Shown here one piece after another: positions 53,194 to 58,101 of a DNA stretch of 64,000 bases (position 1 is its first letter; each line of letters begins with the position of its first letter). The position numbers and the translations under genes were made by a program. This stretch comes from Salisapilia sapeloensis CBS 127946 (taxonomy: Eukaryota; Protista; Oomycota): NCBI GenBank assembly GCA_023334545.1, contig JAADVB010000044.1, positions 33,102 to 97,101 of the forward strand, given 5' to 3'. The notes beneath the pieces are model-generated. The model was not told the origin of the DNA, searched no databases, and saw nothing but the letters and a program-made list of their open reading frames with translations.

Positions 53194-53817
53194 TTAAAGG
53201 TCTGGCAAATCTTCCATCGGGGCACTGCTGACGGTTCGAGTGGTAAAGTAGACGAACGCTTGGAGCGTCGCGACGAGGACGTTGTAGAGGACGATGAACT
53301 TGGTCCAGCCTGCGTACGGGTACGTTTGACAGCACAGCACGGCAAAGAAGAGGATCGTAGCTGCTCGCCCGAGGTAGTTACCGAGGAATGGGAAGTATGC
53401 TTCGATACTGACGCCGTAGACGATGCTCTTGAGGTCGAACATGACGACGACGGCACCAAAGGCCATCGTGTAGAGTCCTAATAGCACCGAAGCGAGCGAG
53501 TAGTGGATGAGCATGGCAAAGCCCTGGATGACCGTAAGAGCAGCGGAGAGGGTATAGAGTCCACCAAAGACTACATCGATCGTAGACGGGTTATCGCCAC
53601 TATCGTTCGTGTCATTTCGAACATGGCCACTCCAGCCGTCGTCCGGATGATTGTATCGAACGTTCGCATACGGATGGACATTGGGTTTCTTAAAGTCATC
53701 TTGCTTCTCCTGTTTCTCTTCCTCTTCACCATCGAGGGATCTACGCTCCTGATCATGCCCATGCTCCTCCTCGCTGCTCACGAGAGGCTGCTTAAGCTCT
53801 TCCTCCGACGCGTCCAT
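53194..53817 (-). CDS. COPI-associated / Tvp15-like Golgi membrane protein
   Basis: Four TM segments with LGLYTMAFGAVVVMFD and YFPFLGNYLGRAATILF; acidic N-terminus from MDASEEE. Confidence 0.75.
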   Translation of the reverse strand: MDASEEELKQPLVSSEEEHGHDQERRSLDGEEEEKQEKQDDFKKPNVHPYANVRYNHPDDGWSGHVRNDTNDSGDNPSTIDVVFGGLYTLSAALTVIQGFAMLIHYSLASVLLGLYTMAFGAVVVMFDLKSIVYGVSIEAYFPFLGNYLGRAATILFFAVLCCQTYPYAGWTKFIVLYNVLVATLQAFVYFTTRTVSSAPMEDLPDL

Positions 53818-53971
53818 TTCTGATTCTTCCAAAATAACTCGTGTGAAGTGGTGGTAAGGACGTCTGAAGTGGCGATAGACACCTAATAGCAGAGGGAGAA
53901 CAGCTACACGTTCCGACCGCTTAGTACGTGCCAAGAATTGACTGAAAGACTTTAATAGTGTACGTTTAGAC

Positions 53972-56473
53972 GTGATGGGATGCTGTCGAGGCGTGAATGT
54001 CCAGCTATTGCTGCTGGTTGCATGTGCCATGGTCGACTATGCGTCGCATACAGTCATGCTCATCCTCGCGCCGCAAATCGCTCTACACTTTTATCCGACC
54101 ACATCGTACGCTCGAGTCGGATTCTATACGGCCTTGTTGTCCGGAGCTGGATTTCTCGGTCATGCATTTAGCTGTCGACCCTGGATCCAGATCGCCAAGT
54201 CCGTACGTAGTGCACAAGGCGTTATTCTATGGGGTCTCGCCGTCCTCGGCGTTGGCTTCTTGAGTCTACTCTTTTGCCAGAGCCTTCTCGCCATGACACT
54301 CGTGCGGTTTGCTACTGGTCTCTTTAGTGGTGTGCTGCCTGTTGCATTAATCGAGATTGACTCTATCTGTGGCAATCGACAGTCCCACTTGGCAGCTTGT
54401 AGCAAGTACATTGGCATTCTCTTCGCTGCGTCCATGACGTACTCTTTGATCTCTCTCACAGGCAAATTGACACCACCCGAGTCCGTACAGCAAGATACCT
54501 CGACGTCCGGATCGACTGCTCATGTAGCTTTTAGTGATGCATCTCTGTACTTTTATCCGCTTTGCTTTGTCTCGATGTTTGCATGGGTCGCTGTCGTCTT
54601 CGTAGTCCTGTCCATGGGCTTTCAACGTGGTCCATCCAACTACGTCCACCTTCATGGTGAAGATGGAGATAGCGACACTGCCGAGGAGGATAGTATCACT
54701 TCTAAAACAACCTCCGTGGACAATGAGCATGCGACGAAAGAAGCACCAACGAGACCTTTAGATCGAGTGAAGACGGCTATAAACGACACATTCCGTCGGA
54801 CATTGCGTGCGGCTGGAGCAAAGCCTGTGATATGGGAACCTCAGCCACACTTTCGAGCGATTCGTGCCATCATACCGCACTACTTGCACGGTTACACGGA
54901 CGATGGGCATGTGATCGTATGGGAGTTCCTAGGTCAGATTCATATGGACAAGCTAGCAAACTCTGGCTTCACGACTGTCGATTTGCGTGACCACTATCGT
55001 TTTCTCTTACAATTCGCGGTCGAAAGACTACTCAAGTCGAACTCGCAGAAGATTGTATACGTTGTCGATTTAGACGGATTGACACTCATGGATGCAGATG
55101 ATCGTGTAGTGGAAAGTGCCATCTCCGTGGCACAAGACTTGCTTGTCAAGTTCCCGGATAAACTATTGAAACTAGTGATTCTGAACAAACCTGTCTGGTT
55201 CTCCCAAGTCATGACACGCGTGCGTCCACATCTACCGAAGAAGACGGCGAATAAGATCACGTTTGTTTCCAAGAAGAATATGTCGAGTGAGCTATTGGAA
55301 CTTATCGGAGCAGATAGTCTACCACGGGGTTATGGTGGATCGAATGGCGTCGAGATGGGTAAGAGCAGTCAAGAGCGGATGTTGGATGAGTTGTTGCGTG
55401 AAACCACTGGATCTCTAGAAGAGACAGTGGAGCTCGTGAGTACGCGTCATCGCGCAGGTAGTCTATCACGCGGTACGGACGACGAGAGTGACGAAGAAGC
55501 TTTCTTCGACTCGCTTGAGTTTGGTCTTCCGGATGATGAAGAGGAAGAAGACATCAGTGGAAAGGTCACGTCTCCTGTGGAAGAAACCGCTGTCATCCAC
55601 TCGCAGACTGCCACGGAGACTTCTCCTGTGTCGCGTAAGAAGTGTCTTTCGAAGACATCTCCGAAGCGTGGTCGCAAGGCACCTGCTCCGTCTCGCAACG
55701 GATATCAGCATGTGATCAATGTCGATCCTCTTGTGGCGGATCTAGAGTCTGCTCATGACATTGCGATTACTAGTGAACCACATGCGTGCCTTATTCTTGG
55801 CGTCTATTTCCTATGGGCACTGCTGCAAATGTGCTTTGACGAGATTCTACCGCTGTGGTTCTTTAAACGCAGCACTGTTGTCGAATCTGCTCCGTTACCT
55901 CTTGCATCTTTGCCTCATTCCGACTCACCGTCTGTGTCGGCTATTACGCTGACAGTGGCGGAGAGTATGGCACTGATGGCACTTGGTGTATTGGTAGCTC
56001 AGCTTTGTTCATGTGCCTTTTCATCAAGCGTCATGACACCCCTCGCAACACTTCGACTCGGATTACTGATCCAAATCCCCATCATTGGCTGTTTTCCTCT
56101 CATCAAGCTCCTTCATGCAGATGAGCTATCCTTTGCATGGGCAATCGTCCTCGTCGTGTTGATTATAAAAAACATGGCGGAAGGCATTTCACTGCATGGT
56201 CTCCTGGCGTTACTCGACAACTCGATTCCAGTGGATCGACGCATCGCAGTTAATCGAGCAGTCCAATTGGTTTCGTACGTGGCACAATTTGTAGCTGGAA
56301 GTGGTGGTCCGCTCGTATTCGCTTTACTCGGGTACTTTGACCGGGAATTTCCATTGGATCAGAGTCTGTTATACTTTCTCCAAGCACTTGGTCTCATCCT
56401 GCTCTTCCTCTTTTCGTTCTTAATTCCAAGTCGACTTAACTTTCCAATGCTCTTTGCCATGGGGAAAAGATAA
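53972..56473 (+). CDS. MFS transporter (ZIFL1-like) with CRAL-TRIO/Sec14 domain inserted in the central loop
   Basis: Single 833-aa ORF: 6 TM (RVGFYTALL..VRFATGLF), CRAL-TRIO (HYLHGYTDDG..VVDLDGL..FPDKLLKLVILNKP..LPRGYGG), acidic FFAT-like motif, then a second 6-TM bundle (DEILPLW..GPLVFA). Confidence 0.88.
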   Translation: MMGCCRGVNVQLLLLVACAMVDYASHTVMLILAPQIALHFYPTTSYARVGFYTALLSGAGFLGHAFSCRPWIQIAKSVRSAQGVILWGLAVLGVGFLSLLFCQSLLAMTLVRFATGLFSGVLPVALIEIDSICGNRQSHLAACSKYIGILFAASMTYSLISLTGKLTPPESVQQDTSTSGSTAHVAFSDASLYFYPLCFVSMFAWVAVVFVVLSMGFQRGPSNYVHLHGEDGDSDTAEEDSITSKTTSVDNEHATKEAPTRPLDRVKTAINDTFRRTLRAAGAKPVIWEPQPHFRAIRAIIPHYLHGYTDDGHVIVWEFLGQIHMDKLANSGFTTVDLRDHYRFLLQFAVERLLKSNSQKIVYVVDLDGLTLMDADDRVVESAISVAQDLLVKFPDKLLKLVILNKPVWFSQVMTRVRPHLPKKTANKITFVSKKNMSSELLELIGADSLPRGYGGSNGVEMGKSSQERMLDELLRETTGSLEETVELVSTRHRAGSLSRGTDDESDEEAFFDSLEFGLPDDEEEEDISGKVTSPVEETAVIHSQTATETSPVSRKKCLSKTSPKRGRKAPAPSRNGYQHVINVDPLVADLESAHDIAITSEPHACLILGVYFLWALLQMCFDEILPLWFFKRSTVVESAPLPLASLPHSDSPSVSAITLTVAESMALMALGVLVAQLCSCAFSSSVMTPLATLRLGLLIQIPIIGCFPLIKLLHADELSFAWAIVLVVLIIKNMAEGISLHGLLALLDNSIPVDRRIAVNRAVQLVSYVAQFVAGSGGPLVFALLGYFDREFPLDQSLLYFLQALGLILLFLFSFLIPSRLNFPMLFAMGKR

Positions 56474-56637
56474 CAAGTAGATGCAGATAGGTATGACGTA
56501 TGAACACGACTCTATTCGTCGAGATTGAATATGCTTTCGTTTGGAAGTCCAACATGTTTTTCTTCTTTATTCTGCTTCAAAACCAAATGAACCACGCACA
56601 GCACGTATGCTCTAGTCCGATCTATAAGCTCTTTGTT

Positions 56638-57810
56638 CTAATGCGCAATGTTCGAGCCGCTCTTGCTCGGTGCAGCAGTCGACATACCCGTCCTTGCATA
56701 CAGGACTTCGACGATGACCAAGATGATGTTGAGAACTATTGCAAAGTAGAGCTGCACGTAGAAGAGCGCATCTGAGTAGAAGATGGCAGTCAAGTATGCG
56801 ACGTAGAAACCAGAGACGTGTGCCGAGATGCCCATGAAGGAGGCAATGCGGGCCAAGTACTGGTACTTGCTAATGTATCGCTGGCGGTACTCTTCCGATG
56901 CTTTCGCGAGGAGAGACTGGCGTGCTTCCTCGGCCTTGACTGCTGCCTCCGTCGTCACGAGGTTCTGCAACGTCAAGTAGATGACGTAGATGCCTAGTAG
57001 GATCGTATCGAGAGCCCATGTCGTCTTTGCCTTGGCTTCCTTGTACTCTGCGCGAACGCTGTCGAGCGTTTCGCCATCGACTTCGGAGTATGGAAGAGAA
57101 TTCTCCATGTACACATTCTTCACTTTGTCATAGACGAGAGCGTGAACCCATAGCGATAAGCCAGCAATTGTCCCGACGGTATAGTACATGTACAGCTCAG
57201 TGTCCGTCGTGGCATACTTCTCGCCACAGATCATGGCCAAGATGATGCAGTGTGGTGCGATGACGAGACCATCTACAAAACCATCCAAGATACGCCCCGT
57301 GCGTGTACCACGCTTGCAAAGTCGGGCAACCTGTCCGTCAGCACAGTCAGAGACGATCCAGCAGAACATGAGTGCCGATGCATAGAAGAGCGATAGGTTG
57401 GGAGGCAAGTTGTACGGTTCGTGGAAAGTTGAGTCATACAAGAAACTAGCAGCCAGCCATCCGAGTCCTAGTCCGAAGATGGTGATCTGGTTGGGCGTAA
57501 TGACGATAGGCATGTAGCTGATGACAACCGCAACGACGGCAGCGAGGCGACGGTGGAAGTAGTAGTCAATCAGTTCCTCGACATCATACATTTTGGTTGA
57601 CACGGCATGGTTATACCGCTCCATGAGCGACAACGCATAATTTCTCGGGGACGACGCAGGAGTAGTCTCACGGCTGGACGGTGACGGCGAGTCCTCTGGG
57701 CTACCGGTCTTGGTCGTATGAATACGTTGTTTCATTTCTTTTTGCTTTTGCGCAGATGAGAAGCTCTCAGTCGTTCCGTAGTCTAAAGTATGCGTTTCCA
57801 AATTGCTCAT
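56638..57810 (-). CDS. CDP-alcohol phosphatidyltransferase family protein
   Basis: ITPNQIT and DCADGQVARLCKRGTRTGRILDGFVD match the DxxDGxxAR...G...D...D signature; start set at MSNLET. Confidence 0.92.
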   Translation of the reverse strand: MSNLETHTLDYGTTESFSSAQKQKEMKQRIHTTKTGSPEDSPSPSSRETTPASSPRNYALSLMERYNHAVSTKMYDVEELIDYYFHRRLAAVVAVVISYMPIVITPNQITIFGLGLGWLAASFLYDSTFHEPYNLPPNLSLFYASALMFCWIVSDCADGQVARLCKRGTRTGRILDGFVDGLVIAPHCIILAMICGEKYATTDTELYMYYTVGTIAGLSLWVHALVYDKVKNVYMENSLPYSEVDGETLDSVRAEYKEAKAKTTWALDTILLGIYVIYLTLQNLVTTEAAVKAEEARQSLLAKASEEYRQRYISKYQYLARIASFMGISAHVSGFYVAYLTAIFYSDALFYVQLYFAIVLNIILVIVEVLYARTGMSTAAPSKSGSNIAH

Positions 57811-58101
57811 GCGTCGATCAGGAGCAGGAGGGGCAGGACCAGGAAGCGTGATGTGCCTCGCGTCTGAAGTTTTGTTGTCACAAAGTGAGTGCTTTCTGGG
57901 ATGAGACGGTACATCACCCGAAGGGAGTATGCATGTCGAAGGTTGACAATAAGTTGATTGCATGCGTGCATGCAATGGATGATACGATGCTTACGTTGGC
58001 ATAAACATTCTGGAAGGTTTTGGATTTATATTTGTGTCTAGTTGAAAGATGTGATTGTCATGTACTAGTTCTAACGAATGTCTGGATAGATTGCGCGTCA
58101 C

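Follow-up and report, generated by a model that had tools for sequence, protein, structure and literature searches.

The window analysed here is a stretch of 64,000 nucleotides (nt) from the oomycete Salisapilia sapeloensis CBS 127946, and it contains a gene in which a Sec14 (CRAL-TRIO) domain is encoded between the two halves of a predicted 12-helix membrane protein of the major facilitator superfamily (MFS). In the list of open reading frames (ORFs), the frame at 53972-56473 on the forward strand encodes 833 amino acids from a GTG codon, and the first in-frame ATG, at 53975, gives 832. Residue numbers refer to the protein from this ATG, and numbering from the GTG start is shifted by +1. Each of three RNA libraries from one organism (X1-X3) yielded one contig for the gene (2640, 2637 and 2626 nt, spanning 53897-56536, 53907-56543 and 53900-56525), collinear and with 0 mismatches, gaps or joints. 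These contigs end at the limits of the gene, and those of the neighbouring genes are separate and differ in depth. Since one unbroken contig runs over the whole gene, the two membrane halves, the Sec14 domain and the short motif that follows it are all present in the mRNA, and the domain is not spliced out. A second, related organism or strain (organism B) carries the same gene at 95-99% identity. An earlier note on this sequence had described one intronless ORF and had raised the possibility that splicing removes the domain; the single frame and the unspliced, collinear contigs bear out the former and dispose of the latter. We conclude that this is a genuine, transcribed, single-exon oomycete gene. 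In run X5, over window positions 53400-57000, organism B has the locus at ~96% nucleotide identity.

The encoded parts follow one another in the order MFS N-domain, leash, Sec14 domain, 12 residues, a motif of the FFAT type (a pair of phenylalanines within an acidic tract), a second leash of ~70 residues and MFS C-domain (Table). The earlier note had read the same succession of six transmembrane (TM) helices, CRAL-TRIO, acidic tract with AFFDSLE and six further TM helices, and all of its coordinates proved right to a few bases. By hydropathy, hydrophobic helices are confined to residues 1-221 and 603-829, leaving a central loop of ~370 residues that contains the folded domain. We modelled the protein with AlphaFold2 (AF2) from a 40-sequence alignment of 20 close orthologues and 20 distant homologues, which gave a mean predicted local distance difference test score (pLDDT) of 78; an earlier model from the 20 close orthologues alone (mean pLDDT 51, TM region 40-70) was set aside. 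In the model, pLDDT falls below 50 at residues 220-261 and 272-282 of the first linker and across residues 486-584. Mean column identity among the orthologues is 0.84 for the Sec14 domain, 0.78 and 0.81 for the TM halves and 0.72 for the first linker.

Table. Features of the MFS-Sec14 gene, in positions of the window, with residue numbers counted from the ATG at 53975.
Feature	Position	Strand	Description	Evidence
Transcript-contig extent (mRNA-like)	53897..56543	+	~75 nt 5' leader, ~60 nt 3' trailer	
Coding sequence	53975..56473	+	single exon, 832 amino acids + stop	ORF list, orthologues
MFS N-domain, TM1-TM6	53999..54625	+	residues 9-217	hydropathy, AF2, VIA-align, Foldseek, ESM features, P0197 homology
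Degenerate MFS motif A	54182..54220	+	TM2-TM3 loop, residues 70-82, WIQIAKSVRSAQG	alignment A2
Linker 1	54626..54838	+	residues 218-288, acidic, Ser/Thr-rich disordered stretch with conserved helix 261-279	
CRAL-TRIO / Sec14 domain	54839..55444	+	residues 289-490	Pfam, AF2, Foldseek, phmmer
T424 and K427	55244..55255	+	T-A-N-K, against T-V-S-K in Sec14	HMMER alignment to Sfh1 and Sec14
FFAT-type motif	55478..55528	+	DDESDEE + AFFDSLE (residues 502-515) with F/Y-G-L extension (to 518)	20-orthologue alignment, AF2
Linker 2	55529..55729	+	residues 519-585, disordered, column identity 0.53	
MFS C-domain	55730..56461	+	amphipathic helix + TM7-TM12, residues 586-829	AF2, 12-TM alignments, P0197, hhalign
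D754-R755-R756	56234..56242	+	TM8-TM9 loop	invariant in 20-orthologue alignment

The Sec14 domain is the sole significant Pfam family in the protein. PF00650 matches residues 303-455 (nt 54881-55339) with an E value of 2.7e-17 and 63.4 bits against a cut-off of 22.6, and the match spans positions 7-153 of the 153 in the profile. The AF2 model gives the domain a pLDDT of 85-97 across most of its length, and Foldseek superposes it on yeast Sec14 with a root mean square deviation of 3.6 Å over 209 columns (E 2e-6) and assigns probability 1.00 to Sec14, Sfh1, SPF and alpha-TTP. The best solved relatives by sequence, found with phmmer, are Sfh1 (E 6e-10) and Sec14 (E 4e-9). The earlier note had entertained a collapsed Sec14 pocket; this was not shown, and the fold as predicted has pLDDT >90 and superposes on Sec14. 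Residues R65, T236 and K239 of Sec14 make up its phosphatidylinositol (PtdIns) barcode (PMC9546280). In the HMMER alignment T236 is matched by T424 and K239 by K427, and both residues of the window protein are invariant in the 20-orthologue alignment. The barcode for phosphatidylcholine (PtdCho; S173/T175 in Sec14, S175/T177 in Sfh1) is not kept, the aligned positions being I360 and Y362. This pair mimics the S175I/T177I PtdCho-binding mutant of Sfh1, and fits with that mutant being the best match in the Protein Data Bank (PDB). From these residues we infer a pocket that is probably PtdIns-competent and whose second ligand, if any, would not be PtdCho.

The membrane part is hardly seen by sequence profiles. 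Pfam returned no MFS match to the window protein even at E<=1, and MFS_1 was matched weakly by 2 of the 20 orthologues (best 8.9e-6). A search of NCBIfam gave no match, and a 20-orthologue profile run against PDB sequences found Sec14-family chains alone and no MFS. The AF2 model packs both halves into one MFS fold, with pLDDT mostly >85 in the N-domain helices (lower at ~131-140 and 161-190) and mostly >90 in the C-domain. VIA-align places model residues 6-825 on the DHA1 transporter SotB with Z 32.7 over 366/366 SotB residues at 3.0 Å, the best solved match; SPNS2 has Z 30.6, and ~50 further MFS structures score Z >21, including FLVCR2, MdfA, VMAT2, MFSD10 and MFSD2A. Against the Swiss-Prot models, Foldseek matches residues 5-821 to Arabidopsis At3g43790/ZIFL2 (TM-by-hit 0.73), and its further matches include ZIF1, ZIFL1, yeast YCR023C and Aspergillus mfsB; the best among predicted structures are ZIFL2, ZIF1 and YCR023C. 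ESM language-model features of the halves taken alone lead to MFS-clan clusters (0.97 for the N-half, to MFS_1, and 0.95-0.98 for the C-half). Homology supplies a further route. An environmental homologue, P0042, scores 57.3 bits with its N-half against Pfam MFS_1, for which the cut-off is 33.4, and the window protein is related to P0197, a longer member of the same cluster, in both the N-half (32% identity, E 5e-26) and the C-half (26%, E 1e-18). Because the model, the VIA-align and Foldseek matches, the language-model features and the P0042/P0197 homology agree, we regard the MFS identity as settled despite the Pfam miss, and the membrane part is, by predicted fold and transitive homology, a complete 12-helix MFS. 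The earlier note's architecture of MFS N-half, Sec14 domain, FFAT-like motif and MFS C-half thus survives analysis by Pfam, AF2 and VIA-align/Foldseek.

Sequence motifs of the transporter core are kept unevenly. Motif A of the MFS, in the TM2-TM3 loop, has the form G-x-x-x-D-R/K-x-G-R-R/K. At its site the window protein has A-K-S-V-R-S-A-Q-G and the Peronosporales consensus is A-R-S-L-K-S-S-K-G, against the canonical S-D-L-Y-G-R-K-R-V of P0197. The D, G and R of the motif are gone in Peronosporales, Pythiales and Albugo as well as in the window protein, and within the family the loss is confined to this Albugo/Pythiales/Peronosporales part. The degeneracy that the earlier note had seen, where it expected D-R-x-G-R-K, is therefore real. 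In the C-domain, D754-R755-R756 is presumably the counterpart of motif A. A conserved TM4 arginine is motif B of the drug:H+ antiporter families, and R111, in the helix at 104-117 (TM4), is conserved at >=90% over the 40 homologues. The stretch M-T-P-L-A-T-L-R (687-694) is invariant in the TM part of the orthologues. At the other end of the protein, residues 1-6 (53975-53992) read M-G-C-C-R-G, a Met-Gly followed by a Cys pair, and a Cys-Cys pair right before TM1 is found again in most orthologues; to judge from these residues, the N-terminus may be a site of N-myristoylation or palmitoylation.

The most conserved stretch of the protein is the block at residues 502-518, with a mean column identity of 0.93 as compared with 0.60 in the linker before it and 0.53 in the linker after it. 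DDESDEE-AFFDSLE lies exactly at nt 55478-55519; the acidic tract has six acidic residues of seven, the seventh being an invariant Ser. The 20 orthologues show no variation at S505, D506, A509, F510, F511, D512, E515, G517 and L518, and next to none at E507 and E508. Short linear motifs typically sit in disordered segments, and the block lies within the AF2 segment of pLDDT <50 (486-584). The FFAT consensus is EFFDAxE with an upstream acidic tract, and variants that bind VAP include EFFECLS of RAB3GAP1 and EFYDAPE of WDR44 (PMC4068158). Core positions F2, F3, D4 and E7 of the window motif match this consensus, the consensus among the orthologues is A-F-F-D-C-S-E, and position 5 is Ser or Cys, the latter as in RAB3GAP1. 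In organism B, a T>C difference at 55516 falls in the third codon position of residue 514, within the core.

We searched with an FFAT-type pattern requiring >=4 D/E in the seven upstream residues followed by x-F-[FY]-[DE]-[ACST], and found it in 57 of 60 family members and in 1 of 153 unrelated CRAL-TRIO proteins (84,103 residues). The deep-branching forms are DSDEE-AFFDCNE in Albugo, SDDED-AFFDCTP in Saprolegnia and SDDD-TFFECTL in Aphanomyces, and environmental forms include SDSDSD-FFDCAE (P0197) and DSDEE-DFYECSE (P0047). All of the listed oomycete lineages keep the acidic run, the F, the F/Y, the D/E and the small residue, which are the features that define FFAT. The earlier note had proposed an FFAT-like motif: its acidic tract and core are matched, and lack of conservation, which the note had counted as a danger to its proposal, is the opposite of what we find across the oomycetes. 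We also considered the block as an LC3-interacting region for autophagy or as a Yxx-phi signal, and rejected both readings since the hydrophobic positions that they require vary among orthologues.

As a feature of the family the FFAT-type motif holds for the oomycete branch and not for the whole. Ochrophyte homologues are mostly without FFAT, and share instead ~A-H-L-G-x-E-N-x-Y-x-Y-D-x5-W-V-L at the same loop position (alignment A2, window residues 492-530; P0057, P0068, P0086, P0091, P0106-P0108, P0126, P0127, P0130, P0133, P0156, P0165 and P0182). The core of this ochrophyte motif (F/Y-Y-D-A/T) is faintly FFAT-like, has no acidic tract and has an extra conserved Trp.

A word-indexed search returned 39 proteins, mostly full-length, and the full-length ones are 47-55% identical to the window protein over its whole length. 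The close orthologues come from Phytophthora, Pythium, Globisporangium, Lagenidium, Bremia, Peronospora, Hyaloperonospora, Plasmopara and related genera, and are annotated as hypothetical or 'CRAL-TRIO domain-containing', with one as 'Major facilitator superfamily domain'. For the wider family we ran a profile search of 1.84 billion representatives, followed by a hydropathy scan and cluster look-ups. The TM / CRAL_TRIO / TM layout was found also in the oomycetes Albugo, Saprolegnia and Aphanomyces, in the brown algae Ectocarpus, Discosporangium and Choristocarpus, in the ochrophytes Phaeothamnion, Mallomonas and the pelagophytes (Aureoumbra, Chrysophaeum, CCMP2097), and in marine transcriptomes and metagenomes. 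All named sources are stramenopiles, and the part order is common to >40 species. A structural search of the ESM Atlas returned CRAL-TRIO clusters alone and no protein of the same layout.

Profile-profile comparison with hhalign matched oomycete to ochrophyte N-halves (probability 73.5%, E 2.9e-5) and C-halves (96.8%, E 2.6e-10), and the crossed comparisons of N-half with C-half between the two groups were negative. Such like-to-like matching fits one ancient insertion of a Sec14 domain into a transporter loop, and not repeated fusions. Internal homology between N-half and C-half was not detectable with hhalign (probability 0.5%). Four environmental proteins (P0052, P0111, P0117 and P0172) have an N-terminal CRAL-TRIO domain followed by just a C-terminal block of 6-7 TM helices, and are either truncated gene models of the MFS-Sec14 family or a separate half-transporter layout. 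The Bremia lactucae protein (P0001, 1234 amino acids) is ~400 residues longer than all other orthologues; its gene model is probably merged with a neighbour, because AFDB aligns its first 836 residues only.

A full-text search of open-access papers and bioRxiv preprints found no paper on an MFS protein in which a Sec14 domain is inserted or an FFAT is present. Three candidate precedents were rejected: in a Plasmodium Sec14 paper 'MFS' stands for mutagenesis fitness score, the PfTUPA preprint concerns PqiA and TULIP, which are another family, and the protein of the Sec14L6 paper has no FFAT. The earlier note had known of no described protein with this layout; this stands for the texts searched, and needs amending in that the family occurs in oomycetes and ochrophytes and is present in databases as 'CRAL-TRIO domain-containing protein'. 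Altogether, the window gene belongs to a conserved, expressed, uncharacterised stramenopile family, and to its oomycete, FFAT-bearing branch.

The reading that we favor, with somewhat more confidence than doubt, is that the protein would act at membrane contact sites, tethered to the endoplasmic reticulum (ER) through VAP, with a leashed Sec14 domain that handles PtdIns. On this proposal, the central TM6-TM7 loop of a DHA1-like 12-TM MFS protein has acquired a Sec14 domain and, 12 residues after it, an FFAT motif. The membrane that holds the MFS body would not be the ER; just a hint as to which it is comes from the vacuolar transporters ZIF1 and YCR023C, two of the best fold relatives. The TM6-TM7 loop of MFS proteins is cytoplasmic as a general rule. 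The Sec14 domain and the FFAT motif should therefore lie on the cytosolic side, as does the MSP domain of ER-resident VAP, onto which the motif would dock. The Sec14 domain would hang on two flexible leashes of ~40 and ~100 disordered residues, long enough for a gap of 10-30 nm, and would thus be held between two membranes near VAP. There it may bind, present or exchange PtdIns and possibly a second ligand that is not PtdCho. The MFS part could transport, in altered form, some small amphipathic or lipophilic substrate, or serve mainly as an anchor. Its missing motif A points to a changed cycle or to anchoring, and the strong conservation of its TM residues to a cavity that works. In Phytophthora sojae, ER-Golgi contacts are marked by a PH-FFAT reporter from human OSBP (PMC13538951), an indication that oomycete cells are able to read such motifs.

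Several observations weigh against this proposal. Pfam detected no CRAL_TRIO_N region in the protein, and a counterpart of Sec14 R65 could not be placed, the N-terminal region of the domain not being alignable. The absence of motif A speaks against a rocker-switch cycle of the normal kind. The ochrophyte homologues without FFAT imply that docking to the ER via VAP is not intrinsic to the family. Core position 1 of the motif is Ala, Thr or Asp instead of Glu, and the invariant Y/F516-G517-L518 lies outside the FFAT definition and may serve another or an additional partner. Finally, S505 in S-D-E-E is a CK2-type site, so that an acidic-cluster sorting signal would fit the same residues.

We weighed three other explanations. 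The first alternative, which we judge unlikely, is that the protein is an ordinary solute or drug:H+ transporter of the endomembranes in which the Sec14 domain senses lipid and thereby gates or tunes transport, without lipid transfer, and the FFAT motif limits activity to ER-apposed patches. Sec14 modules do serve as lipid sensors in RhoGEFs, GAPs and PTP-MEG2, the nearest folds are DHA1-type and ZIF/YCR023C-type solute carriers, and the place of the Sec14 insertion is exactly the loop between the two rocking halves. The invariance of R111, of residues 687-694 and of D754-R755-R756 also suggests a working cavity over a passive anchor. However, motif A of the N-domain is lost throughout the Peronosporales/Pythiales/Albugo clade, the Sec14 domain sits on long disordered leashes instead of being tightly connected, and it retains PtdIns-headgroup contacts typical of transfer-competent Sec14 proteins.

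A second alternative accepts a Sec14-bearing post-ER transporter and denies that the motif is a VAP ligand. The conserved S-D-E-E-A-F-F-D-x-x-E-Y-G-L would then be a phospho-regulated trafficking signal with an acidic cluster and a di-aromatic pair, for ER export or for retrieval from the trans-Golgi network or endosomes, or else the site of some other partner. The CK2 consensus around S505, the invariant extension and the non-acidic core position 1 all speak for it, and the different motif of the ochrophytes at the same place shows that this position of the loop hosts interchangeable short linear motifs. Nevertheless, the residues kept over all oomycete lineages are the FFAT-defining ones, the Y-G-L extension is absent in Saprolegnia and Aphanomyces, and the core variants FFEC and FYDA are proven VAP binders; we hold this alternative to be distinctly unlikely. 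The last, that two MFS half-genes and a Sec14 gene were misread as one ORF through an error of annotation or assembly, has nothing more than the unusual layout in its favor and is refuted by the uninterrupted reading frame, by the collinear transcript contigs over the whole gene in three libraries and by the same part order in >40 species, including Albugo, Saprolegnia, Ectocarpus and pelagophytes; AF2 also joins both halves in one MFS fold, and the chance of such an artefact is negligible.

The VAP-tethered reading can be extended by analogy to a hand-off of lipid between the Sec14 pocket and the transporter, in which one chain would couple lipid movement across a bilayer with movement between bilayers. 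We consider this extension attractive but distinctly unlikely. SPNS1/2 and MFSD2A are MFS carriers of lysolipids and sphingolipids, and the MFS part might work in a similar way, bringing an amphipathic lipid into the leaflet of its organelle that faces the cytosol. The Sec14 domain on its leashes would take up the lipid, or swap it for PtdIns, and deliver it to the ER at the FFAT-VAP site. Such a protein would be the counterpart, fused and of the shuttle type, of partnerships between a scramblase and a bridge such as ATG9-ATG2 or XK-VPS13.

The neighbouring genes were also inspected. Upstream lies a divergent gene (window 53194-54030, reverse strand), whose product is a membrane protein of the COPI-associated family (PF08507). 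The longest ORF of this gene extends into the beginning of the MFS-Sec14 gene. Its transcript contigs, however, end at 53581-53806, so that translation probably starts at an internal Met. In Saprolegnia diclina the COPI-associated family is found directly upstream of the orthologue (L002 5211-5856), there on the same strand. The convergent gene downstream (window 56638-57975, reverse strand) encodes a CDP-alcohol phosphatidyltransferase domain (PF01066, E 9.7e-11). Phytophthora ramorum keeps the PF01066 neighbour (L003 8832-10130) and has a second PF01066 gene ~3.4 kb further on. We considered a functional cluster with these neighbours and found it unsupported, as neither is kept in Albugo or Aphanomyces, which amounts to ordinary decay of synteny.

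Lipid transfer proteins of contact sites are mostly soluble or carried on simple anchors. The presence of a transporter fold, a Sec14 pocket and a putative ER-docking motif on one chain makes a coupling of transbilayer movement with inter-organelle lipid transfer directly testable. Oomycetes include major pathogens of crops and fish, and the FFAT form is confined to oomycetes among the homologues found. Oomycete ORP1 is the target of oxathiapiprolin (PMC13538951), making lipid-transfer proteins proven chemical targets in these organisms; a conserved, lineage-specific membrane protein bearing a Sec14 domain is therefore of basic and applied interest. The Foldseek matches include PDB entries of yeast Sec14 with bound small-molecule inhibitors. 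In addition, the use of FFAT in oomycetes and of another motif in ochrophyte algae at the same loop position offers a natural experiment in how one machine is redirected to different partners.

Each part of the protein has known relatives. With yeast Sec14 and Sfh1 the window domain has in common the fold, the best PDB sequence matches and the conserved PtdIns contacts T236/K239. It differs in that no N-terminal tripod (CRAL_TRIO_N) is detected and the PtdCho barcode is changed to Ile/Tyr, and in being tethered at both ends to a membrane protein, whereas the yeast proteins are soluble. Transporters of the DHA1 type (SotB, MdfA, NorA, MFSD10/TETRAN, and with them plant ZIF1/ZIFL and YCR023C) have the same 12-TM, 6+6 fold, and the TM4 arginine (R111) is conserved across the family of the window protein; unlike them, the window protein is without motif A, scores below Pfam MFS_1 and has a ~370-residue loop that holds a folded domain.

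Closer in cellular setting is MOSPD2, a human ER tether consisting of an MSP domain, a CRAL-TRIO domain and one TM helix; among human TM proteins, it alone is listed as bearing a CRAL-TRIO domain (PMC9692390; PMC8996327). Both proteins would combine a CRAL-TRIO domain and a membrane anchor with the VAP/FFAT contact-site system. However, MOSPD2 is the receptor on the ER side that binds FFAT motifs, and the window protein, with its 12 TM helices, bears the FFAT-type ligand and would sit opposite. Kv2.1 and Kv2.2 are channels of ER-plasma-membrane junctions that build contact sites through a VAP-binding FFAT-type motif, and so offer a case of a polytopic membrane-transport protein that itself bears such a motif; they differ in being ion channels, in having no lipid-transfer domain and in a motif that is non-canonical and depends on phosphorylation. 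STARD3 (MLN64), the subject of a review (PMC8472075), combines a MENTAL domain of late endosomes with FFAT and START. It has a 4-TM MENTAL anchor in place of the 12-TM MFS fold and START in place of Sec14, its lipid domain is appended and not inserted inside the membrane domain, and there is no sequence relationship. STARD3 nevertheless provides the working model for the oomycete protein, since both would bring together on one chain a polytopic anchor outside the ER, a linker in the cytosol with an FFAT-type motif, and a lipid-transfer domain of the box type.

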